Assembly (NCBI GenBank): GCA_964035545.1
Contig: OZ037771.1
Span: 5,985,190 to 6,049,189, forward strand
Direction: 5' to 3'
DNA: 64,000 nt
Source: Bugula neritina
Lineage: Eukaryota > Animalia > Bryozoa
Shown: positions 20,142 to 50,700 of the stretch, piece after piece
Layout: each line of letters opens with the position of its first letter
How positions within the stretch are numbered: position 1 is the stretch's first letter
Notes under the pieces: model-generated
What the model saw: the letters and a program-made list of their open reading frames with translations, nothing else
The model's database searches: none
Told to the model about the DNA's origin: nothing
Position numbers and translations under genes: made by a program

Positions 20142-23100
20142 ATGGATGATGAAGAACGTGTCTTAGTGATTGCTCATAGAATCTTGACTGGGATATTATC
20201 TGTGCTGAGTATAGGGAACTTAGTGAGTCATTTTAAATAATTACTGTTTTCATGCTGCTTCCTCATTTGTATCTGTTGCTGTGGTCTTGCTGGTTCCATC
20301 AGTTTGCTTTCACTTCCTGTATATACAGACTTTAAGTCAGGTCCAACAACTCTAGCACTTCCAGAATTTTAATGCCTCGCTAGCCTCATTTCAACTTAAA
20401 ATGTTTTCTGCATGTTACTTTAAATATCGTATAAAGTTTTGGGGCTAACTTTTACAAATATCAAGCCAAATGGCAACAAACCTTGCAAGTAGTTACAAAT
20501 TTAAGCTTGCTCTGTTTGCTTTACCAATTTAAACTCACAATTAGAACATTGTTGTTCTCTGAACGCTAGACTTAAAAGTCTGGACACCACACATGTTACT
20601 GAGTGGTAGAGTTTAGAGTTTAAAGCAGATACCTGCATATCTGTTTACATGCAGGTACAGCCATTACCCACAGTCCTCATACTATGTTTATGATACCTTA
20701 TACAATAATGATTACTATGTACGCTACATACTATATACTAATACTAGCAACTATCTGCACTATATATTATATATTATATACCATATACTATATATTATAA
20801 TTAGTATACCATATACTATATAATATAATTAGTCTACTATATATACTATATATTATAATTAATATACTATATACTATATACTATAATTAATATACTATAT
20901 TATATTTCATACTATATATTATATTCTCTATATTTCATACTATATGCTGTATACTATATATCATATATTACATATTTTTCATAACTTCCACAAATAAGAA
21001 TAAAGTTACAAATTTTCTACCCAACTCTAGTTACCAAATGCTCACCTGTATTTACCTGCTGTATCCTTTCAGCTCACTGGAGCAGCGGTGGTGGGGATGG
21101 GCATATTCATTCTGCTAGACTTGAGTCCACAATATGGATATAACTATATCATGTATTTTGCCCACTTATACGGCTTCAACCAGAAACCAGGCATTTTCAA
21201 GGCAGCCCTTCTGATGGTTGTTGGTGGTTTAATGGTTATTGTGTACGGAATAGTTAGTCTGGTAACTTTCTGCAGGCGAAGCTACAAATATATGTTCACA
21301 GTAAGTGTAGAGCTAATAGAAACAATGGTATGGCACTGCTAGCTTCATTATATAACATTATATTATATTTTAATACTCTTTTGGTTTTTTTCGTAACTAT
21401 GTACTGACATGCATACACAGTGTGTAGAATTTGTGTACTTTGAAATTAAAATTGTTACCAGATAAAAACAACATAAGCTCCATTTCCTAACCCAGTCTAT
21501 TTTTAATTCTATAATTTATATAAACTTTTACATGAAAATTAATTCGCATTATAAATTGAGTCTTGAATCAATTAGGACTAAAATATAAATCTAGTTTTGC
21601 AGCTGTCTGTGTAACTGAAAACAGTCATATCTCTATAATTTTGCAGCACATAATTCTATTGATGGTTTGCATTGCAATTGAAGTATCAATCGGAGTGTAT
21701 GTCGTACGATTTCAACAAGAGGTACATATTATATACTTAACTTTGTTTACAAGCCTTAAAACATGTGCACTTCTAGTTATAGGTGTGCAGTAATGATATA
21801 TCGGAGGCAGAATTTTTGAGTTTCAAGTTTTTAAGCAGTGAGGCAGGGCCAAGCTCAGAAAATTTCAAAAAGCCACAATCTTTGAATTCTGAAATGCAGT
21901 GTTTATTTTAGACCCATATAGCCTAATCGTTATCCATTATGATTTTTCTGTTATTAGTTAGCATAAGCCTGTTTAACTGCTCATCAAACTAAGAGGCTGG
22001 TCATATATATGGACTTTTAAGGCACCATGCTTAGCTTTCGGATCGCCGTAGATCATAATCATGAATTTCTGCTCTTGAATTATGAAGATGTTGCTATGGT
22101 TTAAATTTTGTAGGCTTACAGAATTCAGAAATTAAGTTTTTAAATTAGGTTTTTTAAAGCAATTTCTACAGTTTTTCAACAAATGACTGTAACTTTAAAA
22201 ATATGCCCCTAAACAACTATGATACAGCTAACACGCTGACCAGATGTTATAATAACTCACAACGCATGAGAACAAATATTCCAGGTTTATGCTTGGGTAA
22301 ACCTACAGACTTATTTTGCAAAGTGACCTGCAGATAATATTAACATTTAATTAGAATAAAAAATGACTAGATCTCAGACTAGATAACTTTGTTATAAGCC
22401 AGAGGCTCATAGAGTTTTTAGCAAGAATGTAAATTCAGAAGTTTATTGTGAACTAGATTCACTAGATGGTGTTATTCAAGTAGAAGTATTTGAATTTAGA
22501 TTGATAAAAGTTTGGGAAAGTTTTTGATGTGGACGATTAGGGAGCAGTATGAGATGAATGAGAATACAACACATTACTACTTGTCAGCCTGGAACCATGT
22601 GCAGAAAGAGGTGCTGATTCAGTTCTCCATCCTATGTTTCCTATGCTTTGTTTCCCATGCTTTGTTTCCCATGTTTTGTTTCCCTTGTTTTGTTTCCCAT
22701 GTTTTGTTTCCCATGTTTTCTTTCCCATGTTTTGTTTCTCATGTTTTGTTTCTCATGTTTTGTTTCCAATGCTACGTATTAGTTAATGATTTCCATGCTA
22801 CGTTTTCCATGCTAGCTATCATAATAAAATGCCTTATTTTAATCACGGATTATACATTAAAAAAATACATGAAACAATTAATTTATTAGATAATTTAATA
22901 TGCAACAAATTAAGTGCAACTCAAATCAACACACTCCCAGCAGCATTAAGTGCAGATGCGAAAACTTGTACTCTATCATATTATGTCACGTTGTTTATAT
23001 TTCCTTATCGATAAATCTAACCTGAATGGTCACGTGTGGTTTTTTATTGGACTAACTTGAAGCTGCATATAAGCTAGCCTATATTCTGTTGTGCAGTATA

Positions 23101-24164
23101 TGTGTTGTGGGGCCAACAATGGGTCTGATTGGACGTTGGCAGAAAGATGGGACAGAGACACTAAAGTTCTTCTTTCCAACGGTTCCTACGAACAGCTCAA
23201 CCTGACAGTTCCAGTATCATGCTGCAGAATGCTGTCCAAGTCTCAGCTACACACCAAGTGGTTTGGTCTTTTGCTCACATCAGAAGGTTCATAGACTTTG
23301 TCAAAGTGCACAATCTAATAAATAAAGTTTTACATTTAGATCTGTAAAGTACTGTACGATTAATATTATAACATTTATTTAAATTTATTATGTTAACTGA
23401 ATCTGTTACCCCTTTTCTAAAAACATTTGTTATATTTCATGATTCCAGAAAAATTAGAAATGAGAGATTCAGACTCAGAACTCTATGACCAGCCATGTTT
23501 GCACACACCAACAGCTTACAACAGTTATATAGAGACTGGATGTGAGAAATCTCTAGCTAAGCACATGCTTCATTACAACGCTGTTATCCTCAGTGGAGCT
23601 GTCGTCCTCACTGTTGCTCAGGTGAGAGATATGTAGAATGCAGATACGCCACCAATGATTTCAGAAATGTTGAAAACTTAAATACTAATGATAACCTCTA
23701 ACGAAAAGTTTTTTAGTAGGCTATTATAAAGGCATATAATTAGCTTGGCAAACATGTCCTGTACATGCAACGAATTCATCTATAAGGTCTGAATTTCTCA
23801 ACTCATCTAACTTAAGAAAAGAAACACATTTTTATACCTTTTGTATCTGATATTTATTTGCTTTGCTAAATTTAGAAATAAAACACTAGCCACTGTAATC
23901 TTTTATATCACTAAAATAAATAGAAAATGTCTCATTTGGTAAGACTTGCTTATTTAGGCTTTGGGAATTCCACTCACAATAATATTCTTCAAAAGTGGAA
24001 AGAAGCCGACAAACCAAGCTGGGAATCCCTGTGCAGGCATTATTTCAGAAAATGAAAAAATGGGTTTTCAGTCATCAAGACTAAAGTTTCGTGAAAGGGA
24101 GGTGAAGAAAAAGTACACATACTTCGATGATGACTTTGATGACAAATGGGAGTCTCCATTGTAG
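20142..24164 (+). CDS. Tetraspanin family protein (divergent)
   Basis: Exons 20142-20222, 21073-21300, 21647-21721, 22500-22610, 23097-23286, 23449-23621, 23958-24164. Four hydrophobic segments; large extracellular loop with W..VQ, CCG motif (YMCCG), PVSCC and GC before TM4; stop TAG at 24164. Confidence 0.88.
22630..22770. repeat. ~14-bp minisatellite after a tetraspanin donor
   Basis: Unit CCCATGTTTTGTTT, about 20 nt after the donor at 22611. Confidence 0.85.
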
Positions 24165-24900
24165 CTGTCGTTGAATGGGACTAAAATAACAACAGTGTAT
24201 ACCCTTTTAACAGGGCTATAGCAACTCATAATGCTACTAGTTCTTTTTTTTAGTAATTTAAACAGTTTTTTGTTTATTTGAGTTTTTTGAGCAATTATCC
24301 TGATTATTTTGCTTTAATGTCAGTTTGTGTTTTGGTGCTTTAATCTACAATCTTTAAAACTATGTATTATATACTTGGCATAAATAATTTTTTCATTGAG
24401 AAAAAATAAAACTATAATAAAAGCGAGCTTAGGGAAATAAATTGACTCTAGATTTTATAGGCTAAATTATAACAGATTTTTGTAAAGTTTGTAATAAAAT
24501 CAAGAGGAATACAGCGTTGTCTATCGGAAAGATGACTGCCTTCACAGCTGTGGACTCTTATCCCCAAGATAAGTGCAGGTTTGACAGTTTTGAAGGTACT
24601 AATATCTAACACTTAATCAGACCAACTAACATGAAATTAATATAAAAAATAAAGCAGCCATAATATTGCATTTTGTCCTCCAGGCTCCAGGGTTCTTTCA
24701 AGTCCTGCTTCACACAATCTTTATTGCTTTGCCTTGTGTCGTTTTCTCAGCCATCTTCATGCATGTTACACAAACTACTGTATATAATATATATACTATA
24801 TATATTATGTATTACATAACTTCCATTTCATTTGGAGAGTAGATGCATTTCATCTAGGGCAGTAGCAACGTCGCCTCTGATAGTCACTGCAGATATTGAC

Positions 24901-27900
24901 ATGCATTTCTATATTATAAGTGTTTGTTTCCTTTTCTGCATACAAACCATCACTGGTGAGTTATCTTTGCTTGATTTTATTTTATTCCTGATTTAACAAA
25001 CAAAACACGATTATGTGTTGAAACTAGCGCTTCATGTTCCTATAAAACAACTGAGTGAGTTGGTGAGGTGAAGATACAAACCACATAGTCATCAAGGGCT
25101 CTAATATAAGCATGTTATTTTTTGCATCATATAACATAAAACTCAAATTATATAGCTTTTGATGGGTCTTTTTCTTTAGATAACTAATTTTATGCTAAAT
25201 TATAACCTTTTTATACAGTTTTTTTACTTGGCCCTTGTATTTAAATAATTTGTTTGTCAGCCAATTTTCATCTTTAGTAATCCTATATAGTTTATAAATA
25301 CATACTGTAATGCATATTTACATATTCGAAGGCTGTAATGAATGCTGCCAAGCTGGAGGTTCATGTGGAGATGCCGTGTTTGATGACTGCGTAGGCGGGA
25401 GCTGGGACTACAGAATATCCTGCTCTCCCAGCTATCACGCATGCTGTGTCCCTTCCAACCCCACGAGACCTACATCCACCACTTCACGGACCCACCCCAC
25501 GACGTCTAGCACTCATTCCGCCACTCCATCTGTCACTCCACCCTCTCGACCAGACTCCCCTGCCCCCTCTCACTCTCCACCCGTTTCTAGTGAGTCATCG
25601 AGTTCTATATTTTTAATTAATCGCCTTGAATGGGTCACAATGTATATTTTCTGGTTATTAGGTTAAAGCCGAAACTCCATGTAGTGTTTCTGTTGGTATT
25701 AGTATTTATTTACTGCTAATTAATCATGTGCTGTGCTTTCAGAAGGCACAAAGAGAAGTGAACTCCATAAATGTCTTTTGTGTAGATTGTTTTGAAACAC
25801 ATTGTTGCTTGCACTTTTCTGGTAAACTTGTCAGGAAATTGTGGATATAAGAAAAACTCTGCACCACGTATTGTTGGGGGTGACATAGCCGTGCCCAACT
25901 CATGGCCATGGATTGCTCAGTTAGAACGAGACTATTTTGGTTGGAATGGGTGGGAGCACTTCTGTGGCTCTACACTGATATCTGACCGATGGGTGGTGAC
26001 AGCAGCACATTGCGTTGCTAAGTATAACGAGTAGGTTCTAAATGCTGCCGGCTTTTCCAACAGCACCTCTGCACTGTCAGCCTGTAGCACCCCTGTGGTG
26101 TCAGCCTGTAGCACCTCTGTGGTGTCAGCCTGTAGCACCCCTGTGGTGTCAGCCTGTAGCACCTCTGTGCTGTCACCCTCTAGCACCCATGCGCTGTCAG
26201 CCTATAGCATCTCTGTGCTGTCAGCCTGTAGCACCTCTGTGCTGTCAGCCTGCAGCACCCATGCGCTGTCAGCCTGCAGTAGGCCTGCGCTGTCAGCCTG
26301 TAGCACCTCTGTGGTGTCAGTCTGTAGCACATAGCTCTTCCCAACCGCCTTAATAGCTTCTTCTTGCTTGCAGATTGCGGTAGGCGAATAGAGCATGCTC
26401 TCTCCTCTCACCCTTTGATTGTGGGAGGTCAACAAGCTCACCCAAACAGTTGGCCATGGCAGGCTTCATTGCAGGAAGACTTTGGCTGGGCTGGCTACTT
26501 CCACTTCTGCGGTGCAACACTCATTACTAGTAGATTTGTTGTTACAGCTGCACACTGCGTTGGCAACTGGTCAGTAACTGCTATTACATGCTACCCAATG
26601 ATTTGTTTTATTTAGTGTTGTGTATAACTACTGCTACTGCTACTGCTACTGCTACTGCTACTGCTACTGCTACTGCTACTGCTACTGCTACTGCTACTGC
26701 TACTGCTACTGCTACTGCTACTGCTACTGCTACTGCTACTGCTACTGCTACTGCTACTGCTACTGCTACTGCTACTGCTACTGCTACTGCTACTGCTACT
26801 GCTACTGCTACTGCTACTGCTACTGCTACTGCTACTGCTACTGCTACTGCTACTGCTACTGCTACTGCTACTGCTACTGCTACTGCTACTGCTACTGCTA
26901 CTGCTACTTCTACTTCTGCTACTACTGCTGCTACTACCACAACTACAACTACTGCTACTTCTAATTCCACTTCTGCTGCTACTGCTGCACTACTGCTGCT
27001 ACTACCACAACTACAACTACTGCTACTTTAACTTCTACTTCTGCTGCTACTACTACTGCTATTTTGAACACTAATGCTTGTTCTGCTACAACTAATAATA
27101 TTGATTGATTTATTGCATATCACAAACATGACAATACGTTGTGAAATTCAGTGTAAATACTGGCTATAGCATAAGTAAGAATGAACAAAAATGAGAGAAA
27201 AAGTCAAAACTCTGTTGCATTATTTAGAATAAAAGCTCATTTAAAGTATTTGCAAGATGTCGCAAGAAGCTATCTCTGCCCCATGCCCCTCTATATTTGA
27301 TGGTTCGATATCTTCCAGAAGGGCATTGACTCAGAAAGTTATTGATGAAATGGTCGTTGTCTACTATATATTTGATATAGCATAAGCTGTATATTGCGTT
27401 TATTACTTTGAGCTTTTATATTGTAGGGCCGACCCAAATATGTTCAGAGTGGTTTTGGGAGAACATGACAGAACTGCTACTTCTGGCCGAGAAGTTATCG
27501 CCTCCATCAAAAGAATTATTGTTGTAAGTCTAGCATTAAATGGATTCGTAGAGTGTTATCATGTATATAGAAATAGAGAACTGCTAACAAATTAAAAATA
27601 AGAGAACAACCCTTAATTTCAAAATGGTGATTGATTTGCTGGGCATGACTTTATATAGATCGGGGTTCAAAAAGCTTTTCCTAAAATGTATTGGTATACG
27701 CACATAAATTTTACTTTCTTTCTTATTTGCATAAAGATTTTTTATTTTTGATGAAGCCTTTGAGATCTCTGGGAATGATGTATCCCATTTTACTGCTCAA
27801 AATGTGGCCTCATTGTGACTCCGTGCATGGGGTCAAGCCAAGGTCATTGCTGATGCCAGGAAAAGCATCTGATCATAATGGTTCCTGTGTCACAGTAAAT

Positions 27901-29956
27901 TCTTTTTCAAATCATGTAGCTAGCATGGTAAGAGGCATAGTCTTTGGGTCTTTTGAAAACCCTAGTAATCAGGGGCTCTCACAAAAACAAACTCAAACAA
28001 GATGGGTTGAATTTCACAGCTCAAAACTTCAGTCAGTTATATTTTGATAAACTTTTGAGTATAAAATTAATGAAAAGGCATATTATGGTAGTATGTTTTG
28101 TAAATGTTGAGAGACACAGCTCATTACATGCTGCATTCACTGTCTTGTCAGCACGAAGACTGGAGTGCTGATGTAAGAGGATCGCCAAGTGATTTGGCTC
28201 TTTTGGAGTTATCAACTCCCGTTGAGTTTAATGACTACATTCAGCCAGTCTGCCTTCCAGAATATCAGCATCAAGATTTCTATCCTGAAGATGATTGCTG
28301 GATCAGCGGATGGGGAGATACTAAAGGTTCGGCATTTTCTTCAACCGATTAATTACACACTATTACAGTAGTATTGGTAATGTTATATATACTGTATCTA
28401 TAATGTTGATTTGACATTTTACCTAATATATTATGTGTTCAACTAAATGTTCTGTAATCAAATTTAGCCTGTGTTACAGGCACTGGAGATAGCAACTTTC
28501 TTCAAGAAGTCAAGCTAAACATAACACCCTACGAGGAGTGCAGAAACAAATGGCTAACAGGTCCTCATTCTATAGCTGTGTCTCACTGTAATAGTTCTCA
28601 GTCTATAGCTGTGTCTCACTTTAATAGTTCTCAGTCTATAGCATGTCTCCACTGTAGTAGTCCTCACTCTATAGCCATGTCTCACTCACTATAATAATTC
28701 TCAGTCCATAGCCATGTCTCAATGTAGTAGTTCTCAGTCTATAGCTGTGTCTCACTGACAATTTGATTGTTTTCAGTCTCTTGAAAATGGTTTTATTTTT
28801 TTAAAATAAATTTTTAGGAAATTTAAAGCTAAATTTATAAAAATTAATTCAATTGAGACAAACCAAGTCAATATTGCATGGTCAAGTTGAATGCGCTGGT
28901 TCGAAATTTGACATCTGTGCATTGTCATTAAAGTACTACAATATTAAACTGCCACTTTAAATTAGTTTGTGTTTGTTTCTTGTAGCTGCAACTGATTCAA
29001 TTAATAGAGGAAAAACTCCTCATTCCTGTTGTCAGGATGGCTGTCACATTTAGACAATTTCCTGCAGTTTTTTAAAACATAATTTGTATTTTATTTAGCC
29101 ATCAGACATAAGTGTTGTTGCATTATATGCAAACTAATATATGTCAATACAGGTACTGGTGGTAAAGATTATGTGAAAACATCTCATGTCTGTATTGGAA
29201 ATGGCGTACCAGGTGCTTGCAATGTGAGTTAAAGACTGTTAATGTGTAATTTAGTATTTTATTTCCTGCCCAAAACCTAGCCTCAACATAAAGTTTCCAC
29301 ATGTGGGCCATATATTGCTATGTCCCACACAGAGGTGTTATACTATTAGTTGCTGTGTGATGACTGCCAATAAGTATAATTTATTAATTTAAACAATGCC
29401 TTTGATAAAAACCTGCTAGTTGAGAGTTGTTATTAGTAAATGTTGGCTATAGTTTCTTTGCTCTATTGAACATTTGACAGAAGGCAACTGGCAACATGCT
29501 TGCATGACCAACCCAAAGTAAAAGTGAAGTTTTTTGCTCTTTTGATATGATATCTAGAATGTATAATGTGTAAACTGAGTGCGTGCGCAGTGTGTGAATT
29601 GTATAAATATATTTATGAGCTAAATAAATGTATGTGTAAACTGTATAAATGCATGTGTGTACTGTATAAATGAATGTGCGTACTGTATACATGAATGTGT
29701 GTACTGTATACATGAATGTGCAAACTGTATGCATGTGTGTGAATTATATAAATGTGTATGAAATGTATAAATGTACAAGTTTTCTCATTTCCAGGGCGAC
29801 TCTGGCGGGCCCCTAGTCTGTGCCCGAGACAACAAATACACACTGGTTGGAGCCACTTCCTTCGGGGCAGCTGGTTGCCAGGAACCTGAGGCTCCCAATG
29901 TTTACACTAAGATTTCTCACTTCCTTCCTTGGATTTTGGAGAAGATCAGCCCATAA
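24901..29956 (+). CDS. Secreted S1A (chymotrypsin-fold) serine protease zymogen with N-terminal Cys-rich module and P/S/T linker; two alternative activation-site exons
   Basis: Exons 24901-24955 (signal peptide [18 protein letters not shown]), 25332-25589, [25835-26030 or 26374-26569] (IVGG...TAAHC), 27427-27523, 28152-28326 (DLALLEL; CWISGWG), 28480-28560, 29153-29223, 29795-29956 (GDSGGPLVC). The His/Asp/Ser triad is intact; AATAAA at ~30013. Confidence 0.9.
25835..26030 (+). CDS. Protease alternative exon A ([11 protein letters not shown]|IVGG...TAAHC)
   Basis: tgtcag acceptor, GA|gtaggt donor, 196 nt, phase 1 in / phase 2 out, open frame. Confidence 0.85.
26062..26330. repeat. 24-bp minisatellite (~11 copies) filling the intron between protease exons A and B
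   Basis: Unit TGTCAGCCTGTAGCACCTCTGTGG/C. Confidence 0.93.
26374..26569 (+). CDS. Protease alternative exon B ([14 protein letters not shown]|IVGG...TAAHC)
   Basis: ttgcag acceptor, TG|gtcagt donor, 196 nt, phase 1 in / phase 2 out, open frame. Confidence 0.85.
26628..27060. repeat. (GCTACT)n hexamer microsatellite with a degenerate tail
   Basis: Perfect run ~26630-26906, then degenerate CTA/CTG triplets. Confidence 0.97.
28565..28757. repeat. ~33-bp minisatellite immediately after a protease donor
   Basis: Unit ~TCTCAGTCTATAGCTGTGTCTCACTGTAATAGT; starts about 5 nt after the donor at 28561. Confidence 0.85.
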
Positions 29957-34100: not shown

Positions 34101-36937
34101 CCTAAATACTGGATGTTAGAATCAAAATAGACATCTTACCTGCTGGCTACCAATACTTGAGCCGGCCACCACTGTTACGTCATTCCAGTAGTTAGTCAAT
34201 GACTCAGCTATCAGGAATCTTACAAAGACAAAGACATACAGTATAAATGTAGCCTCCTACATCAAAGATATAATCACCAGTTTATCATATATAATAAGCA
34301 ATCCACACTTCTTCAAGTAATATGCCACGCAATGTAGTCAAAAATGGGCAGTTCAAACTGTAAAATCTTAACCTAGTAAAATTAAGAAAACATATACTCA
34401 TAAATCACATTTTCATTTTCAAGGTAGAGGTAACTACCTGCATTTCACATTAGTCAAGTCGGCACTAGGTGGAATGTTCCAGCTTTGGGTAAAGACTGTA
34501 TGACGTGAGAAATCATTCTTTACAATACTTGCGCTCTGTAAACATCAAGTTGAAAATATATTACAACTTTTGGTGTTCCACCATACTATAAGTATGATAA
34601 TCAAGTCATGCTATGTTTTTGATAAAGCAAAAAAATGAGGCAGAATTACTGTACAGAACAAAATTTTGTAGCAATGCAGCTTTAACCGTCAAGCAACACA
34701 TGCGATACAATACACTGCACAGTTACCCAATCAATAAACATGTGCAAAATAATACATTGCACTTCACATCTACCCAATAGACTTGTGCGATACAATATAC
34801 ACTTTACAGTTACCCAATGGACATGTGTGATGCAATACACTACAATTCACGGCTATCCAGTAGATATGTGTGATGCAATACACTACAATTCACGGCTATC
34901 CAATAGACATGTGCAATGCAATAGACTGCACAATACAGCTGCTCTATTGCGGCAACTTCTAACTCAATGTGTCATAAGCGACATAAAGTGACACTTAGTA
35001 CAAGGTTATAGGAGGTGGTCTGATATGCAGACATTTCAAACTACAACAGAACTTGACACTTTGCCTCCATCTAATTGTCCTCACCCCATCATTGCAGGTG
35101 ACTTGCGTGTATCCATGGAGGGGTTCGTCCCACACCCCTGCTGCATCCACCCAAGCATTGTTTTGCTTGTCAACAGGAGTAGCAACAATTCCAGCAATTG
35201 TTCCACTTGGTGTGGAAGGAGCAATTTGCACTGCAGAAGGAGAACAAACATATGAGTTTCTATTAATATTAAATATACTTCCCAATTCGTCTCCTCACAC
35301 AGTCTGGCAGGTTTTCCAGAACATGTAACATTATAATATAATTTTGACAGTTTTTAGACATGGCTGCTGTTTCCTAAACTAAAATAAGTTTGAAATGACT
35401 GCTAGGAATAATGACTCATTGTGACACAGTTTACTTGATAGTCAACAAATAGAAATCAGAGAATTTTTAATACACTTTATAGCTGTATATCAGTATGGAT
35501 TGCATTACATTTTTGAGGTTTTACTTTACTGGCAAACATTTTATCAAGTTTTATGTTGCTAGCTCTGCTCTCTGCCTATCATGGCATGTGTCATCAGGTT
35601 GCCACATGTTCAGGTGTGCAGCATTCAGTAGGCAACTGTAGGGTGTAGCTCTCTTGTGACACACTGACTCATTATACCACACTGACTCATTAGACCACTG
35701 TGACACAATTAGTCAGTGTGGTACAATGACTTAGTGTGTCACAAGAGATCTACATCCTACAGTTGCCTACTGAATGCTACACACACTGGGGCATGTAGCA
35801 ACCTGATGACACATGCCATGGTAGGCAGAGAGCAGAGCTAGCAACATAAAACCTGATAAAGTATTTGCCTTCAAAGCCAAACCTCAAAAATGTGATGCAA
35901 TCCATATTTATATACCGCTATGCAGCTATTAAAAATTCTCTGATTTATATTTGTTGACTATAAGGTAGACTAAAATGCCACACAAAGTAGACAACACGTG
36001 TGTTACGGTGCTGTAAAGTACAGTATAAAACTAAATACGTTGGCACTTAGTTGCTTGCTATAAATGATTAGGTTTTCTCTTCCAGGTGTGACTAATAGCA
36101 TATGGGAAGCCCTCCCAGATATGCAGAGATTATTGCATGGATTATAGTATTAGTGAGACAGACAAGGATGTGCTAACAGATATATTATACGAATTATGAA
36201 AGATTAGCTGCTACTATAAACAGCTGAAGCAACAGTTATTGGGAGAGGTTGTTGTTAAATAACTAAATATATGGCACCATATTGTACTATGACTTTTAGA
36301 CTTAACTCATCCTTATATTTTTTATGTAGTAATTGTCTTTTAGAAATAGACATTACTTGAAAGCATTTATTTTATAATTTAAATAAATGCTTGAAGTAAA
36401 TCCTTTCAGCCATTACTTTTGCTCATCTTAATTTTAAAAATCAACATAATTTATTCGGGTGTATTGAACCAAAGGTTATATTTTACTAAACAGATTTATA
36501 ACTGTATTCTCCAGAATTAAAGGTGGGAGGGGGTGTGTTTGGTGAACTGTTTACCTGCATTACATTTTACAGTGGATAGCAAAAACTTTCATAAGTTCTA
36601 ATAATTAAATGGCGCTTGAACCAAAGGCTTGATGTCAGCTATCAACTTAGCTGAGATAAAGTACATAGTCTAGAACTAGAAAATACATTATAACAAAGTA
36701 GGTAGTTACCAGATAGCAACAGTGATTTTAACTTGATTTATGTTAGAACTCACTAATGAGCTTGGAGCCGTCAGGTGAGGGAGAGCAGAGCACTGTATAA
36801 GGCAAGGTGTCCAGAGGTTGACTTGTGGACCCAAGTGGATACCATGTAGAACAGACACTGAGACTCAACAGACTGGTAGGCTTGGCAGAAACCGTCATCG
36901 CCAATACCAAGACGAGCTTCACTGCGTGTTTAAACAT
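31119..36937 (-). CDS. Secreted protein: signal peptide + divergent Reeler-like domain + Thr/Ser-rich linker + chitin-binding type-2 (CBM14/peritrophin-A)-like domain
   Basis: Phase-compatible exons 36937-36754, 35230-35085, 34535-34438, 34218-34140, 32421-32283, 31679-31595, 31293-31119. The Reeler-like end reads 'QSWNIPPSADLTNVKCRFLIAESLTNYW'. The C-terminus 'YWC...TNCSSYY...FRCNGGLKFNTVNCRCDW...IC' matches the CBM14 pattern. Domain calls are by eye. Confidence 0.72.
31349..31575. repeat. 27-bp minisatellite (~8 copies) filling most of the last intron of the Reeler/CBM14 gene
   Basis: Unit ACATGATGTCTAGAGTCTAACAGAAGT. Confidence 0.9.
35428..35971. mobile_element. Long foldback (palindromic) element, ~260-bp arms
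   Basis: 35428-35690 is the imperfect reverse complement of 35708-35971 (e.g. GTTGCTAGCTCTGCTCTCTGCCTA / TAGGCAGAGAGCAGAGCTAGCAAC), with a short central spacer. Confidence 0.85.
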
Positions 36938-38712: not shown

Positions 38713-41700
38713 TTAAACGATCTCTTCAATATTTGATCTTCTCAGCTCGGAATGACCACTGAAAGCAGACAATGTTAACTGTAGTTACAACCATATTATA
38801 TGATATTACAATATTCTATTATATTTTATTACACTATATTATGTTATACTACGTTATATTATACCATGTTATATTATACTATATTATATATACTATATTA
38901 CATTAGATTACAACTAGCAATAAGTATATCATAATTATCTATAACTATAGTTCCATCATCATAAATGGAATACATTTCTGTACACCCAGCAAGAGCATTG
39001 TTCTAGTGAACTGCACAGCGACAGTAATCTACCCACCCTGCATGTAACGTGGTGAGGTAAGGTGAACAACTGCACAATACACAGACATATGGAGAGTCTC
39101 CCACCTTTTCATATTCGGTAAGACAATGTGCACAATAGAAATCTATTTCATGATATAATTTATTATCTGCATATAAATAATACTCCAATGCTAGTGCGAC
39201 AAATTAGAGAATACATTAAGACATTATTAAATGAATATTTTACCCAAGCATAGACGACACAGCGAAATGAGCAGACGACTCTATATAGAACTATATATAG
39301 TCTAGTATACAACAGTTATATATAACCTAAAACTATACTATAATATATTATTTATAATATAAAGTTATACTATATAATATTGCATATAATATAAAGATAT
39401 ACTATGCTATATGATGTTGCATATAATATAAAGATATACTATGCTATATGATGTTGCATATAATATAAAGATATACTATGCTATATGATGCTGCATATAA
39501 TACTACCTTTGGGCTTGATTATTAGAAAATAAGAAGAAATGACTCACTCAATGTTTTTCCCAATCTTATAATAATGTTCCACTCCAATCCTGTGGCCGAG
39601 AATCTCCACAAACTGGGTGTCGTGTGTGATGATAATGAGCTGGAAGTTACGCTGAGCTTGCCGAGAACGAGTTATACTGGAGAAAGAAAGAGAAGTTAGA
39701 GGTATCAGAATAGCAAGAGCTAGTCACTGCTGCATAAATCAGCATTACATGGAAGACAGAGTTTAGTTGCTTTTATATTACACAGTGAAATATATGAGGT
39801 ATACTTCCCATTTGACGCTATATCAATAGACAGCATGTGCATAGCATCACTAAGGGACAAGATAACCAGTGTTCACCAGGCTATGATGCCCCTGTCTATG
39901 TACTGCACGTCACAAGATGAAGAACAACTTACTCAGCTAGAGCACAGGCTAGACTCTCAATATTCTCTACGTCCAGATTGGTTGTCGGCTCATCTAGAGC
40001 CAGGATACCACAACTCAGGCAGAATGTCTCGGCTAGAGCCAGACGTATGATGAGTGACGCTAATACCTGCATACGGTACAGTGTATACAGTACATTATAC
40101 AGTGTATACAGTACATTATACAGTGTATACAGTACACTATACAGTGTATACAGTACATTATACAGTGTATACAGTATATTATACAGTGTATACAGTATAT
40201 TATACAGTTTATACAGTACATTATACAGTTTATACAGTACATTATACAGTTTATACAGTACATTATACAGTGTATACAGTATATTATACAGTACATACAG
40301 TACACTATACAGTGTATACAGTACATTATACAGTACATTATACAGTACATACAATACATTATACAGTGTATACAGTACATTATACAGTGTATACAGTATA
40401 TTATACAGTGTATACAGTATATTATACAGTTTATACAGTACATTATACAGTTTATACAGTACATTATACAGTTTATACAGTACATTATACAGTGTATACA
40501 GTATATTATACAGTACTTACAGTACACTATACAGTGTATACAGTACATTATACAGTGTATACAGTACATTATACAGTACATACAGTACACTATACAGTGT
40601 ATACAGTACATTATACAGTACATTATACAGTACATACAATACATTATACAGTGTATACAGTACATTATACAGTGTATACAGTATATTATACAGTGTATAC
40701 AGTATATTATACAGTTTATACAGTACATTATACAGTTTATACAGTACATTATACAGTTTATACAGTACATTATACAGTGTATACAGTATATTATACAGTA
40801 CTTACAGTACACTATACAGTGTATACAGTACATTATACAGTGTATACAGTACATTATACAGTACATACAGTACACTATACAGTGTATACAGTACATTATA
40901 CAGTACATTATACAGTACATACAATACATTATACAGTGTATACAGTACATTATACAGTACGTTATATAGTTTACACAGTACATTATACAACCTGTACAGT
41001 GCATATAGTATAGTAAATACAGTTTATACAGTGTATACAGTACACTATACAGTGTATAGAGTATACAATATATACAGTACAGTGTATTATATAACATAGA
41101 TGGTAATAGACAGTAGTCAATATAATTGATTTGGTAAAACAAGAAGAATCAGAGCAGCAGTATTCAGGATACAACAGATTGATCTCTGCTACAACATTCC
41201 GCAAGTGTTACTAGATAATCCAGATTCTAATTACTGTATCATTTCTTTACATTATATACAAGTAGAAGTACACACTGCCCTAAGTTCACAGTCCATACTG
41301 CCTACTTGAGGGTGGAGTATGACCGACCCGAAGCATGAGAACTATTCTGGAGACGTCAGACTATCAGAAAAATGCACCAACCTTTTGTCCGGCACTGCAG
41401 CGCCCTCTCATATCCATCTGTGTGCCGTTTCGCACCATTACCACCCGGTAGTTGTACGTCTTTCTCTTGGAGATATCTACAGCCTCTCCATGATCATCAT
41501 TAGCACTGTCTGAGCAGATCTCAATGTAGTCGATATCTAACCAGGGAATATATTAGATGATGTGTAGAGTTAATACAGCTGTTTACAGTTACTATATTTC
41601 CATAAGTTGATACCATGTCTCAGCATGGCGAGTCAGGTAACAAGAAACTACAGTATGAAGATGCAATTTTTATGAAATTGATAAAATTTCTTTATTTCTC

Positions 41701-44700
41701 AACTACATTGTAGAGAACAGGAAAATCTATAATTCATAGATATTATGTTATTGTAAAAGATTGTCATTTTGCCATAGAAAAAGTTAAAACAAAGCAAATG
41801 AGAACTGAAAACTGAAAAGTGAAGCAGCAACCCATAATGTGTATATAAAGTAGTACACAGCACAGAAATCTCACCGTGGCCACGATACGTCTCTTTCCAA
41901 AGATCTTTGATAATTCTGTTAAGGTCAGCCATTTTGTTCTGATGGTATTGCATGATGGCTCTGTCCAACGCTTTGTAGTATTTGTCCAGGTCTGTCACAA
42001 CAACCTTATTTACCTGCAGTTCAACGTAGCAATGTCAATTGTTTTACCTGCTGCATAATGTCCTAATGTTAGCTACCATACCTGCAGTATAGTGCAGTAG
42101 TGTACACTAGTCTACCTGTCAGACACCTGTCATACACCTGCCACCTATCTGCCATGCACTTGTCACACACCTGTAATACACCTGTCACACACCTGCCATA
42201 CACCTGTCATACAGTGTTCTAGTGACAAATAACCTACATGCACAGTGGTGTCACAACTCATCACACACCTGCAAGGCAATACTCTGCTTCATGTACACAG
42301 CCTGCGCATCTTTCAACTCCTTCGCATTGAGTTCTAAGGTGAGAGCTTTTAGCTGTTCTTCTCTCATCTTTTTCCTTTCTGTGGCAGCAACTTTCTACAG
42401 ACAATTGTGTTCATATACATATATAATACTCTGTGATATACTATATTATACTCTGAGATATAATATACTCTGTGATATACTATATTATACTCTGTGATAT
42501 ACTATATTATACTCTGTGATATACTATATTATACTCTGTGATATACTATATTATACTCTGTGATATACTATATTATACTCTGAGATATACTATATTATAC
42601 TCTGTGATATACTATATTATACTCTGTGATATACTATACTATACTCTGAGGTATACTATACTATACTCTGAGATATACTATATTATACTCTGAGATATAC
42701 TATATTATACTCTGTGATATACTATATTATACTCTGAGATATACTACTCTGTGATATACCATATTATACTCTGTGATATACTATATTATACTCTGTGATA
42801 TACCATATTATACTCTGTGATATATTATACTATACTCTGAGATATACTATATTATACTCTGTGATATACTATATTATACTCTGTGATATACCATATTATA
42901 CTCTGTGATATACTATATTATACTCTGTGATATACCATATTATACTCTGTGATATATTATACTATACTCTGAGATATACTATATTATACTCTGTGATATA
43001 CTATATTATACTCTGAGATATACTATATTATACTCTGTGATATACTATATTATACTCTGAGATATAACAGTCTCACTTCATTCACAAGCTGGTCCTGTCT
43101 GTTCACCAACTCATCTCGCTGCTCCGACAGCCGGGCAGGTTCCAGTCCACCGAGTTTTAGATTTATCTTCTCCATGTCCTTAGCGCACTCTGCGGCTTCC
43201 TCTACTTTAGCTCTGTACCGTAAGTTGTCCTTCAGCTCTCTCTCCCGCAGCTGAAGGACAAAATCGTATCTTACACATAGGAATATACAACTAACATTTA
43301 CCACAATACATTGCTCTAATTATAGAAATAGAACTCATTCACTACGTCCCCATTTTTCGCATTATGTGAATTGATTTTTCACTCAATGCATGGGGACAAT
43401 GTCAGTCGAATGAAATCACAACCATAGGTTAATGCAAGCCTCAACCGCAAATCCATATGCGCCATACCGGACAGGTCCTTCCGAATCATGGGTACGCAGT
43501 GATTAATAACATTCGACTGCACACAGAATTAACACTTAGTACATGTACCAACACTTAGTACATGTACCAACACTTAGCACATGTACCAACACTTAGCACA
43601 TGTACCAACACTTAGCACATGTACCAACACTTAGCACATGTACCAACACTTAGCACATGTACCAACACTTAGCACATGTACCAACACTTAGCACATGTAC
43701 CAACACTTAGCACATGTACCAACACTTAGCACATGTACCAACACTTAGCACATGTACCAACACTTAGCACATGTACCAACACCGTGTATTAAATCTCTCA
43801 AGTTATAAAACAAACCCTCTGCTCTGACAGCAACTTGTTAAGTTCGTTGATTTCATTCGTGTGCAACTCTCTAGTTTTCTCGCATTCCTTCGTCTTGGCG
43901 CGAACTCTCTGCAGCTTCTCTTCAACCTCAGAGAGCTCCTCGTGTTTCTTATCGGCAACATACCTGGATGAACACGAGACTGCTTAAGAACGAAGACAGA
44001 GTTTAGAAGGTCTGGAGGAGTCTCAAGTCAACTACTAGTAAGTCAAGTCTCAAGTCAGCTACTAATTAGAGTCAAGTCTCAAGTCAGCTACTAGTAAGTC
44101 AATATAATTGTGTCAAATTTTCAGTTTTATTGAGTTTTCATGTACTGATTAGTAATATTTGACTTATTCAGTTTCTCAAATAAACCACAGCAAATCCAAT
44201 ATTGTCTAAGAAATTATTAACACACCCATATATTACTAAACTATCTAACTCAGAAAAGAGAAGGTAAACTACAACATAAGTAATGAAAGCCAAGCTCTTT
44301 ACCTGCCAATATCTGATTGGACTTTACTGAGTCCATCAAGTTGAGACGCCAGAGTTTGTTTCTGAGCAGCTAGCTCTTCCAGTCGGCTTTCTTTCTGGTT
44401 CCGTATTCTCCTCTTTTCAGCCAACTTACTCTCAATTTCTTTCTCAACAGGATGAAGTTGATCAGTCAGTTCCTGAAATACATCTTAATATAACAGTTCA
44501 GCACATCTGGTGAACATAACTTATATACTGTAACTAACTACACTGTAACCTAACTATAATGTAACCCAACTAACTATACTGTAACCTAACTAACTATACT
44601 GTAACCTAACTAACTACACTGTAACCTAACTATACTGTAACCTAACTAACTACACTGTAACCTAACTAACTGTACTGTAACCTAACTAGACTGTAACCTA

Positions 44701-47700
44701 ACTAACTATACTGTAACCTAACTAACTGTACTGTAACCTAACTAACTAGACTGTAACCTAACTAACTATACTGTAACCTAACTAACTATACTGTAACCTA
44801 ACTAACTATACTGTAACCTAACTAAATACACTGTAACCTAACTAACTATACTGTAACCTAACTAACTACACTGTAACCTAACTAACTATACTGTAACCTA
44901 ACTAACTATACTGTAACCTAACTAACTACACTGTAACCTAACTAACTATACTGTAACCTAACTAACTGTACTGTAACCTAACTATACTGTAACCTAACTA
45001 ACTATACTGTAACCTAACTAACTGTACTGTAACCTAACTATACTGTAACCTAACTAACTGTACTGCAACCTAACTAACTATACTGTAACCTAACTAACTG
45101 TACAGCAATGTAACTAACATTAAACATATTATTAACGTAGATTCGTCTTCTATCATACTGTAGTCAGTCTGAAACCTCTCTATTGAGAAGCATGGGTTTT
45201 GACTCAATAAATTACAAGTTTAATTCTAACCTAACAAATCACAACTCATACTTTTTTCAACTCTTCATGATTTAGATGGACAACTCCTAAACTTGTGTAC
45301 CTCAACTTCCTGTTGCAGTTTGGTGACTTCTTCCTGTAAAGATGTCTTCTGCTCTTCCATCTTGTGTTTCTCCTGCACGCCCTGCTGGATCTTCAACTTG
45401 TCAGCATTCAAGTCATTCACTTTGGCTCTTAACCTCTGAACTGAGTCGTTGTGTTTGCTGATTTTCTTCTGCTGCCGCTCCGCACTCCTGGTCACAGTGT
45501 CACTACATAAAGTATCAGTAGTCAGTCATGGGTCATTTTACTTAATATAGTACACACTGGAAATCTCCAGTTTTTAGCTATTTTTCACAATTTAGGTGCT
45601 AATGCACAAGGTTTTTTTCACAAAACTAGTAAAATATCAATAAATACACCTAAATAATCAAGGATCTTCTTAATTTTGCTTGATTTCCCATGTTTTTTCT
45701 AATTTATTTCGCTAATTTGGATTGCGGATCGTTATGGAAAAAACCATAACGGCCCCCATTTGAAAGTAGCTGAATAATTAGGAAAAAACATGGGATATCA
45801 AGCAAAAGTAAAAATAACCTCGATTATTTAGGTGTATTTATTGATGTTTTACTAGTTTTGGGCAAAAATCCATGTTCATTAGCCGCTAAATTGTAAAAAA
45901 TAGTTAAAAACTGGAGATTTCCAGTGTGTACTATATTAAGTAAAATGACCCTCGTGGCACAGAGACTGCCCAGCAACCTCTTATCACAGATACATGTCGG
46001 GGAAACGAGGAAACGGTGCAGTGATCGGCAGAGATGTACAGAAAAACTTCATGAAACAAGTTATTCTCTTTTTATGTGAACTCTAATTTAGAAGAGAGTA
46101 CAGAGTCCCATTGTTTATGAGTATGGAGGATTCTCTGCTATGTTTGTCCATTGAATGGTGAAACTGCGTCCAAACTACGTATAAACAACAAATCAACATC
46201 TGAAGTCTAATAGCTGCAGCCATGGCATGCTGGGCAGAGATATCAAACTTGTGAAATACAACGTAAAATTATCACTGGCAATATAAGAATTCATAATCTA
46301 TATAAATTGACTTTTAATAATATACTATTACTAGCAGTGAGTAGTGAATGATTAGTAGGAAGTAGATAGTAGTGAAGAGTTAGTAGTAAGTAGGTAGTAG
46401 TGAAGAGTTAGTAGTAAGTAGGTAGTAGTGAAGAGTTAGTAGTAAGTAGGTAGTAGTGAGTAGTGAGTGACTAGTAGTAGTGAGTATGTAGTAGTGAGTA
46501 GTAAGTAGGTAGTAGTGAGTATTAAGTAGGTAGTAGTGAGTAGTAAGTTACTAATAGTGAGTAGTGAGTGACTATTAGTGAGCAGTACAGAGTGAGTGAC
46601 TAGACTTACAGAATACAGAGAGACAGTGAAGATACCACAGAGAAGACTTACTACTTGATTTGTATATCGTCTTCTTCTTCTGTTATGACATCCACACTCC
46701 TCGTCACCTCTACGTTTACAGTATAATATATTGAATGATACAGCTCTACGTTTACAGTATAACATATTGAATGATACACCTCTACGTTTACAGTATGATA
46801 ATATATTGAATGATACACCTCTACGTTTACAGTAGAATATATTGAATAATACACCTCTACGTTTACAGTAGAATATATTGAATGATACACCTCTACGTTT
46901 ACAGTATGATATATTGTATAATACACCTCTACGTTTACAGTATGATATATTGTATAATACACCTCTACGTTTACAGTATGATATATTGTATGATACACCT
47001 CTACGTTTACAGTATGATATATTGTATAATACACCTCTACGCTTACAGTATGATATATTGAATAATACACCTCTACGTTTACAGTATAATATATTGTATA
47101 ATACACCTCTACGTTTACAGTATGATATATTGAATGATACACCTCTACGTTTACAGTATAACATATTGAATGATACAGCTCTACGTTTACAGTATGATAA
47201 TATATTGAATGATACACCTCTACGTTTACAGTAGAATATATTGAATAATACACCTCTACGTTTACAGTAGAATATATTGAATGATACACCTCTACGTTTA
47301 CAGTAGAATATATTGAATAATACACCTCTACGTTTACAGCAGAATATATTGAATAATACACCTCTATGTTTACAGTATGATAATATATTGAATAATACAC
47401 CTCTACGTTACACCACATTCATGCCTATCCTGTCAGAGCTACCTAAATAACTTACTTTTATTTTAAAATCTCGCCGTTTGTGAACCTCTGATGGTAATGG
47501 CTTTGTTAAGCAGGCTAAGGATCTATTTTTACCAAATTACCGCAAGGTTTTAGTATAGCCTCATTAAAACAATGGCCGGTAAGCTTACCAAGTTGGCTGA
47601 TTTTGCTCTGTTGGAGTTGTACTTTCTCTTCAAGCTGAGATATATCAGATGCTAGCTGGTCTAGTTTATAGACATCAGATAATATGGCTTTCATAGACTC

Positions 47701-50700
47701 CTCATCATCTAGTCTCATAGACACGTCTCCTTCCAGCTACACAACCAGATATATAACATAACCTTCTAGCTACACAACCAGATATATAATATAACCTTCT
47801 AGTTACACAACCAGATATATAACATAACTATCCAGCTACACAACCAGATATATAACATAACCTTCCAGCTACACAACCAGATATATAATATAACCTTCTA
47901 GCTACATAACCAGATATATAATATAACCTTCTAGCTACATAACCAGATATATAACATAACCTTCCAGCTACACAACCAGATATATAATATAACCTTCTAG
48001 TTACACAACCAGATATATAACATAACCTTCTAGCTACACAACCAGATATATAATATAACCTTCCAGCTACACAACCAGATATATAATATAACCTTCTAGC
48101 TACATAACCAGATATATAATATAACCTTCCAGCTACACAACCAGATATATAACATAACCTTCCAGCTACACAACCAGATATATAATATAACCTTCTAGCT
48201 ACACAACCAGATATATAACATAACCTTCCAGCTACATAACCAGATATATAACCTTCTAGCTACACAACCAGATATATAACCAGCCATATATATAACATAA
48301 CCATATAGATAATATAACCATATATATAACATAACCATATAGATAATAAAACCAGATATATAACATAACCACATATATAAAATAACCATATGCCTACAAA
48401 ACCATATATATAAGATAACCATTTAGCTACACAACTAGTGAAACATGCTTACAGTGTGGTGTTATAATACTGTAGTGACAGTCATGGCACTGAATAGTCA
48501 TCTCATCACAGCTAACTAAACCAGTACAGTGAAATCACAACCAAAATGCTTTTCTGAAGCGAATCAAAAATATACTATGAGAGAAATCCATTCCCTAACT
48601 CTTAACAATACTAAATTGCTTGCTAATACCCAATTATGTATTTATTTCTCTAAAGAATAAGTTTGGCTATTTTTATTTTATAAAAATAGCCAAACTTAGT
48701 CAACTTCATAAGGCGGTTCTAGGTAAGCATGAGTGTGGGGAGACAATTTTAATATTAAAACCAAATAAGAGAAACATTAGAAAAGAGACTATCCGTACCT
48801 TTGACATAGCTAATTTCTTGGTCTCTATCTCTTTGCTGATGTCAAACATACTTTCCCGGTGTGCAGGCAACTCCTTCTCAAGTTCACGCAGCTGTATAAA
48901 ACACAATCAATAGAGTTATCTTTCAATACACATACTGGACTCTATACTGCAAATTTCATGACACAAAGTGAAAGCAATACTACAGAAATCATAGCACCTG
49001 CTGCAAAGTGTCATGCTTGGTGGATTTATTACCTGATGTATCTGTGGGACCAGGTGTTGAAGTTTCTCGTGTTTGGCCTGAAATTTCTCGAGCTCCTTCT
49101 CGCAACTCTCCAATCTTGCAGGTAACCCTTGCACTGTCTTCTCCAACTACATGCATATAGCAAGTCACGCATGTCACACAACCTGACATTGGCTGACACA
49201 AGTTGTTATTGGTTGACAAAATTTGCTAGTGGTTGACACCAACTGCTATTAGTTGACGCAATTTGCTATTAGTGGACACGCCGTGATTTTCTTTTAAACC
49301 AATAAAAGAACCAAGTGTCCCACTAACTCATAGGCAGCCAGAACGATCTTTTGGCAGACCACTACACATTTAGTGAACCCAAAAGATAAGGCAGAAATTA
49401 CTAGCTAGTTGCTCTCTTGCAATGAAAAACCACCAAAATTCATCTTAAATTTCAAAAGAAGACCTGAATATTGAGAAAAATAACTGGAAATAAGAAAGCA
49501 GGCAAAAAAGGTAAAAGCAGATAAGGAAAGAGAAGAGAGACTAAGAAGAGATCAAGAGAGCTTAGCATCTGTGACTCACCTCATTGGCTAGTTCATCTAC
49601 TTCCTCTTCCTCGGAGAAAGGACGCTTACACAAAGGGCACTTCTGCTCACTCTTAGGCTTGTCTGCATCTGTTAACATTCCATGATATCGTGCAAACATG
49701 TTTTTCACTCCGTGTAGCAGGCCTCGGTCACTAGGAGATATAAAGATGTGTCGTTAAGTACGAGAATACTGTTGAAATACAAAAGGGCACAGAAGTGAGA
49801 GAGCCGTGACTTCATGTTTACTAAAGGTAAGATGCCTAGTTTAGCTTATTTCACCACATACCAAAAAACATCTAAACCAAAAGTGCTACGGTCTACAGTG
49901 CAGCTAGCTAAAACAGCTGTAGATGTGAGAACGTACTGTGAAAGTAAACTGGGCATATGATAAATTATTCCATGTATGAATAACTTACTCTTGCTTGGCA
50001 GCGATTCTGTTCGCGTAGTCAGCCAACGTGTCATCAAAACGATTGATGTCGCACTCTGCTGTTACCTTTGAAGTTATCTTGGCAATGCTTGACTCACAAC
50101 TGGTCACCTTTTCTCTGCCAACAGAACATACACACAGATAAAACTCAATAAATCAAAGTGGCTGACTTGACTATACAAATTTTTAGCTCTCCTAAAGTCA
50201 TCAACAAATAACTGTGTCAGTTAGGTTTATCAACATTACGCGTAAGTTGCTTCAAAAATATAATCCAGTTTGCAGGTAGTTTGCTTTAAAAATACACGCC
50301 AGTTCACCTGGTGATGCAAGTATTATGTATATAATACGCATTTTATTATTTCTCCCTATTGGTATAAAGTAGGAACCAAAGAAACTCAATCTGCTGAGGA
50401 TTGAGTGTACATGAAGTAAGATGATGTAAACTAGCAAATATTTCTAAAGTACACATGACCAAGGGTTAGTTTGGCTTAGTATGGACCACGTGTTTGACGC
50501 AGTGTGGCATGTGTACTTAACATAGTTTGATTAAATTCGACACAGTTCGACTATTTCTAAACTACACATGACTAAGGGTAAGTTTGGAAATGAACCATAT
50601 GTTCGACACAGTTTGACATGTTTGTTTGACTTAATTTGACAGAGTTAGGCGCGTCTGTATGCAGTGAACAAGTTACCCAGCAGCAGAATGCTTCATCTCC

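Follow-up and report, generated by a model that had tools for sequence, protein, structure and literature searches.

The window, a 64-kb stretch of chromosome 7 of Bugula neritina (OZ037771.1), contains on its plus strand a gene for an S1 protease of the secreted type, with GT-AG introns throughout. The exon that encodes the activation site and the catalytic His57 is present twice in tandem, as exon A (OZ037771.1, 6,011,024-6,011,219) and exon B (6,011,563-6,011,758). The parts of the gene, in window coordinates, are as follows.

24901-24955, + strand: exon 1, with the ATG, a hydrophobic signal peptide (called by eye) and a phase 1 donor; from sequence and translation
25332-25589, + strand: exon 2, a domain of about 40 aa with eight Cys (weak matches to a beta-defensin-like fold), followed by a Ser/Thr/Pro-rich linker
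25835-26030, + strand: exon A (alternative), pro-peptide ending in Pro-Arg, residues 16 to about 63, His57; the derived type (Ile30, Gln32, Arg35, Tyr insert, Glu39, Trp51, Ala60-Lys61)
26031-26373, + strand: A-B intron, 343 nt
26374-26569, + strand: exon B (alternative), pro-peptide ending in His-Pro-Leu, residues 16 to about 62, His57; the canonical type (Gln30, Ser32, His40, hydrophobic residue 39, Gly60)
27427-27523, + strand: exon 4, common to both isoforms, end of the 60-loop and the 70-loop; phase 2 acceptor for both A and B
28152-28326, + strand: exon 5, common to both isoforms, catalytic Asp102 and Cys122
28480-28560, + strand: exon 6, common to both isoforms, with the weak donor GTCCTC
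29153-29223, + strand: exon 7, common to both isoforms, Gly189-Ala190-Cys191 of the S1 pocket
29795-29956, + strand: exon 8, common to both isoforms, Asp194, catalytic Ser195, Gly216, Asn226 and the stop codon
30013-30018, + strand: AATAAA after exon 8

Exons A and B are each 196 nt long, flanked by AG and GT, and enter in phase 1 and leave in phase 2. Both encode the pro-peptide Cys, an activation site (SAPR/IVGG in A and SHPL/IVGG in B, the slash marking the cleavage) and the SWPW, HFCG and TAAHC motifs. Translation of the exons joined through A gives an open frame of 364 aa; isoform B has the same length and phase, and exon B joins exon 4 in frame. Including both exons brings a stop at codon 173, and including neither a stop at codon 143. 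Downstream there is one Asp exon and one Ser exon, and the genome contains no second close copy of the gene, the next matches being at most 58% identical. The preliminary description of this DNA, made from its letters, had claimed the tandem exons with their motifs, the single downstream Asp and Ser exons, and productive splicing with only one or the other of the pair; all three claims were borne out. At the other S1 loci checked in the B. neritina genome, the gene either stands alone or forms a tandem pair of whole genes, and each gene has one His exon. The donor of exon 6 (GTCCTC) is weak beside the GTATGT, GTAAGT or GTTAGT of orthologues, and a 33-nt minisatellite follows it directly (window 28560-28757).

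Three other features of the window were noted. A plus-strand gene lies upstream (20143-24165), with hydrophobic exons and a Cys-containing loop; it looks tetraspanin-like by eye, and Pfam gave no match for two of its exons. A near-perfect inverted repeat of 544 nt (35428-35971), with arms 87-91% complementary, is probably a MITE or foldback element. On the minus strand lies a RAD50-like gene (39900-53800) with its Walker B exon near 39932-40018; its introns contain large tandem arrays.

Exons A, B, 5 and 8 match PF00089 (Trypsin) with 42-54 bits, against a cut-off of 20.6, and His57, Asp102 and Ser195 stand in conserved motifs, which places the enzyme in S1A. It has the marks of a zymogen in the IVGG of both A and B, with Ile16 as N-terminus, and in Asp194 before Ser195. 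The pocket is not of the trypsin type: Gly189 stands in place of Asp189, as the preliminary description had pointed out, and is accompanied by Gly216 and Asn226, so that the enzyme is not trypsin-like. This Gly189/Gly216/Asn226 pocket is kept in every orthologous lineage covered (window, L001, L003, L024 and L026). The best PDB sequence matches of the orthologous exons are 1bru, 1pyt and 1acb (elastase, chymotrypsin C and chymotrypsinogen). The enzyme resembles chymotrypsin C, pancreatic elastase and chymotrypsinogen A, all S1A, in having a pro-peptide Cys1 together with Cys122 and a residue other than Asp at 189, a likeness that consists of sequence matches and may not mean orthology to any vertebrate enzyme. 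It differs from them in its extra beta-defensin-like domain, its mucin-like linker and the Gly189/Asn226 pocket. By homology, both products would be secreted and, after activation, held as two chains by a Cys1-Cys122 bond.

The domain of exon 2 is single copy in the B. neritina genome, and its Cys pattern is conserved in six lineages, with eight Cys against the six in beta-defensin spacing. An AlphaFold model (pLDDT 67) has a short helix and three strands, and its fold matches are mostly beta-defensin-like and weak (Z 3.0-3.5, Foldseek E >4); we take this fold as a lead only. Pfam gave no match for the domain in seven sequences, and neither did the ESM Atlas; a clip domain was found neither by Pfam in the seven sequences nor among the fold matches. 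Speculatively, a small disulfide-rich domain on a mucin-like linker might attach the enzyme to a surface or matrix during digestion or defence.

Searching with a profile built from A and B brought up short gene calls in marine metagenomes and sequencing runs, and the contigs that carry these calls were examined. The A/B pair, with identical exon phases, was found in seven further lineages (L001, L003, L004, L014, L016, which is the same as L024, L020 and L022), which by their similarity appear to be other bryozoans; L003 and L004 come from one run and could represent either two paralogues or a sample in which two species were mixed. With B. neritina included, the pair is present in all eight lineages whose contig spans both positions. 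The order A-B-exon 4 recurs in each of the other seven, with single Asp and Ser exons wherever contigs reach; the Asp exon of L024 is a variant form. Two retrieved contigs contributed little: P0164/L010 looks chimeric and has low coverage, and was left out except as a length-carrying query, and P0169/L023, a short contig with one distant exon, was of no use for dating the duplication. This L023 exon (134-329), which has the same phase, carries Ser32 and Met at P1 together with a DYFGW loop like that of A. Protein homologue searches returned no spliced full-length relative.

These loci refute the reading in which A and B are two paralogues collapsed by the assembler, which has become hardly credible. 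Repeats do flank exon B, and tandem S1 gene pairs do occur elsewhere in the B. neritina genome, but the order A-B-exon 4 is found on independent contigs of seven other lineages, some with gaps of 65-75 nt between the exons, and a second Asp or Ser exon is found neither nearby nor elsewhere in the genome.

In a tree of the exons, a single label change is enough to part the A exons from the B exons, and this is so in 100% of the bootstrap trees (support 90/82). The A exons thus cluster together, as do the B exons, which makes the duplication older than these lineages; homogenisation is not visible. Over the mature part, mean pS is 0.80 for A and 0.76 for B, which is saturated, while mean pN is 0.11 and 0.21. 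Between B. neritina and the other lineages pN is 0.05-0.15 for A and 0.15-0.26 for B, and pS 0.53-0.94. Splice sites are kept across lineages, and introns share nothing. Exon lengths range from 184 to 208 nt and are always 1 mod 3; because only this remainder is kept, the equality of 196 and 196 nt in B. neritina is chance and not a signal. The earlier view that both exons are maintained is upheld by the presence of the pair in eight of eight lineages and by pN far below pS; both exons are old, intact and under purifying selection.

An ancestral pair of which B. neritina now hardly uses one exon, or is losing it, seems improbable to us. Exon B evolves twice as fast as exon A, and repeats have expanded on both sides of it in B. 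neritina; in the other direction, both exons are open with good splice sites, and the pN values just given are low in both. One contig of another lineage (L002, 655-665) has a frameshifting deletion in exon B that removes the Cys42 region. However, short direct repeats flank this deletion, and L003, of the same lineage, lacks it; the deletion may be a null or rare allele, or an assembly slip.

The pair has the properties of homologous mutually exclusive exons: the two are tandem, homologous, of the same phase and of similar length, and are conserved across eight lineages. In all seven lineages tested, A and B are each in frame with exon 4, A plus B is out of frame, and each exon alone keeps the frame where both or neither does not. 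The frameshift of A plus B is automatic for any duplicated phase 1/2 exon, and so makes single inclusion the only productive form but does not prove that both exons are used. Either-or use of both exons is very probable.

Beyond the frame, no exclusion device was found in intron motifs, RNA pairing or intron length. The A-B intron ranges from 65 to 397 nt across lineages and has internal AGs; an intron of up to 397 nt with many AGs speaks against steric exclusion as a general device. No motif or stem in this intron is conserved across lineages and its folding is no better than that of shuffles (z = -0.88), which also speaks against conserved RNA pairing. In B. neritina the intron is mostly a lineage-specific 24-nt minisatellite (26062-26330, 11 copies). 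Just 3′ of the exon B donor there is a 6-nt microsatellite of about 72 copies (window 26628-27061) that is absent from orthologues, and in L016 (6515-6680) the exon 4 acceptor and first codons are tandemly repeated several times before the real exon.

Co-inclusion of A and B, or retention of the intron between them, could instead be the point of the arrangement, yielding a truncated or double-headed product or a regulated decay switch. We regard this as very doubtful. The 65-nt intron of L001 reads through in frame when retained (P0005), and an unspliced A donor reads Glu-stop in five lineages. The in-frame read-through, however, is not conserved even among alleles of the L001 lineage (the intron is 66 nt in L012), and the other six lineages tested stop within A or just after it. 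A half-barrel product would also leave unexplained the conserved catalytic motifs in both exons.

The preliminary description had centred on the P1 residue, proposing that splicing switches the activating enzyme by exchanging Arg for Leu before Ile16. Across lineages the P1 residues of A and B are Arg and Leu in the window, L001 and L004, Arg and Met in L022, Phe and Leu in L003, Arg and His in L016, and Arg and Arg in L014 and L020. An Arg versus Leu/Met contrast thus exists in four of the eight lineages. A contrast of P1 class is absent in three (L014, L020 and L003), and as these still keep both exons, P1 is not what defines the pair. Nor is it noise. Exon A has Arg at P1 in seven of eight lineages (eight of nine with L030), and His-Pro-Leu or His-Pro-Met precedes Ile16 of exon B in five of eight, despite saturated synonymous sites. 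The locus tree is unrooted, has one strong branch and does not polarise the P1 changes; these five lineages occur on either side of that branch. Leu at P1 occurs in only seven of 239 other S1 domains compared. A Pro-Leu sequence suits an enzyme of the chymotrypsin-C or elastase-2 type. Given the recurring His-Pro-Leu/Met and the conserved non-tryptic pocket, an activator of this type, perhaps the enzyme itself, is plausible for B in the lineages that have this site.

Some individual sites stand out. Exon A of L003 (409-604) has Phe at P1 and Arg at P2, so that both isoforms there have hydrophobic activation sites. The exon B pro-peptide of L020 (598-660) ends in LSGSPR/IVNG, close to the LSGLSR/IVNG of chymotrypsinogen A, which may hint at an ancestral Arg in B. 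At L007 (G000:C8:12354500-12364499, minus strand) two tandem S1 paralogues have His at P1 in one and Arg in its neighbour, the same kind of activation-site difference arrived at by whole-gene duplication.

Aligning the eight A with the eight B exons gives nine columns in which the two sets have no residue in common, and all nine lie after Ile16; the columns of the pro-peptide contain none. In chymotrypsin numbering, taken from an alignment to chymotrypsinogen 1acb_E, A versus B has Ile/Val versus Gln at 30, Gln versus Ser at 32, Arg versus Glu at 35, a Tyr insert in the 37-loop of A, Glu versus a hydrophobic residue at 39, Trp versus Phe/Tyr at 51, Ala versus Gly at 60 and Lys versus varied residues at 61, and the 60-loop is longer in A. 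Contacts with substrates and inhibitors in S1 enzymes are shaped by the 37-loop, the 60-loop and residue 39, all of which lie along the prime side of the cleft. Ser32, His40 and Asp194 form the zymogen triad (PMC4418343). Exon B keeps this triad in eight of eight lineages, and exon A has Gln32 in eight of eight. Among 239 other S1 domains Ser32 is found in 136 (57%) and Gln32 in 7 (3%), and six paralogues in the B. neritina genome all have Gln30, Ser32 and His40. As both sets favour Ser32, B is the canonical version and A a derived one, more strongly constrained. In tissue plasminogen activator, reinstating the triad reportedly made the zymogen tighter, His40 contributing the larger share. Gln32 by itself may therefore have only a modest effect, and in A it might still form a hydrogen bond to His40.

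These results bear directly on the proposal that the pair exists to choose its activator, with a trypsin-type enzyme for A and a chymotrypsin/elastase-type enzyme, or the protease itself, for B, making a one-gene cascade or amplifier. We give this a minority place. The prevalence of Arg in A and of His-Pro-Leu/Met in B speaks for it, as does an uncharged pocket in an enzyme whose non-Arg P1 residues are Leu, Met, Phe and His; initiators that cut after Leu and autoactivate are known in insects (ModSP, PMC10732536). Against it stand the lineages with Arg/Arg, Phe/Leu and Arg/His, all with both exons, and the pro-peptide without a fixed A/B difference. Of the earlier Arg/Leu switch, then, what stands is the recurrent His-Pro-Leu/Met site and the conserved pocket, while two Arg/Arg lineages, one Phe/Leu and one Arg/His depart from it; as the main reason for the pair it does not hold up, the fixed differences being all downstream of the cleavage site.

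We favour, as the rather more probable account, one gene that yields two isoforms by use of A or B, in which splicing swaps the prime-side loops and perhaps the latency of the zymogen, with a P1 that varies by lineage added to this. Cells would splice in A or B to make two full-length secreted zymogens of the chymotrypsin/elastase type, and double-inclusion products would be lost to premature stops. Both isoforms would have the S1 pocket, Asp102, Ser195 and the N-terminal domain in common, and hence the same P1 preference; what selection keeps apart would be the N-terminal half of the mature enzyme. Isoform B would have the canonical Ser32-His40-Asp194 triad and a hydrophobic residue 39, and isoform A Gln32, Glu39, a longer 37-loop and a Lys-bearing 60-loop. 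The isoforms would then differ in prime-side contacts with substrates and inhibitors and possibly in the latency of the uncut zymogen, effects drawn from general knowledge of S1 enzymes and not from a model of the B. neritina protein. The P1 of the activation site would travel with the exon, and in B. neritina isoform A would need activation by a trypsin-type enzyme and isoform B by one that cuts after Leu.

In a stronger version splicing sets both trigger and latency. Isoform A, without Ser32 and cut after Arg, would be a leaky or trypsin-triggered starter, and isoform B, a tight zymogen, would be switched on by A or would activate itself; the His-Pro-Leu site of B may fit the enzyme's own pocket. 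This seems unlikely to us, although if it were true a single gene would provide a two-step cascade.

The pair is real, conserved and probably functional. Whole-gene duplication is the usual way in which S1 proteases diversify, and the other S1 genes checked in the B. neritina genome follow it; here one gene has kept two versions of the activation site and of the N-terminal active-site loops until synonymous sites were saturated. The arrangement amounts to a swap experiment done by nature, in which the S1 pocket stays constant while the 37-loop, residue 39, the 60-loop and Ser32 of the zymogen triad change, and it bears on whether splicing can set zymogen latency or the choice of activator. For bryozoans it offers a first way into the study of extracellular proteolysis. 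In a literature search that covered few subscription journals, neither this gene nor any internal exon pair exchanging the S1 activation site and the His57 half was found described. The class of mechanism is known; the swap of activation site and His57 half, of which we found no report, is the new part.

The MASP1 gene makes MASP-1 or MASP-3 by splicing after common N-terminal domains, and there the whole protease domain is swapped by alternative terminal exons. In the B. neritina gene an internal exon swaps only the first quarter of the domain, and the S1 pocket is common. In serpin-1 type genes of insects the alternative exons vary the reactive loop. The likeness to such genes, for instance PpSerpin-1 of Pteromalus as cited in PMC12758981, is that exon duplication and splicing tune a protease system from one gene; according to that account they diversify the inhibitor, whereas the B. 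neritina gene diversifies the protease and its activation site, with two copies only. Drosophila Hayan PA and PB (PMC10732536) are a further case, being splice isoforms of an extracellular S1 zymogen whose N-terminal domain is small and Cys-rich; the two Hayan isoforms have identical clip and catalytic domains, differ in a linker insert and are both cut after His, while in B. neritina the exchange affects the catalytic half and P1. A known class of homologous mutually exclusive exons alters functional sites of enzymes (Lam et al. 2021, PMC7954323), with PKM1/PKM2 as an example, and the main text of that paper mentions no protease, trypsin or peptidase. The B. neritina gene resembles the cases described there in its tandem duplicated exon, its either-or use (for B. 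neritina, as we infer) and its variable residues at functional sites, and differs from them in that the exchanged exon also bears the zymogen cleavage site and a residue of the catalytic triad.
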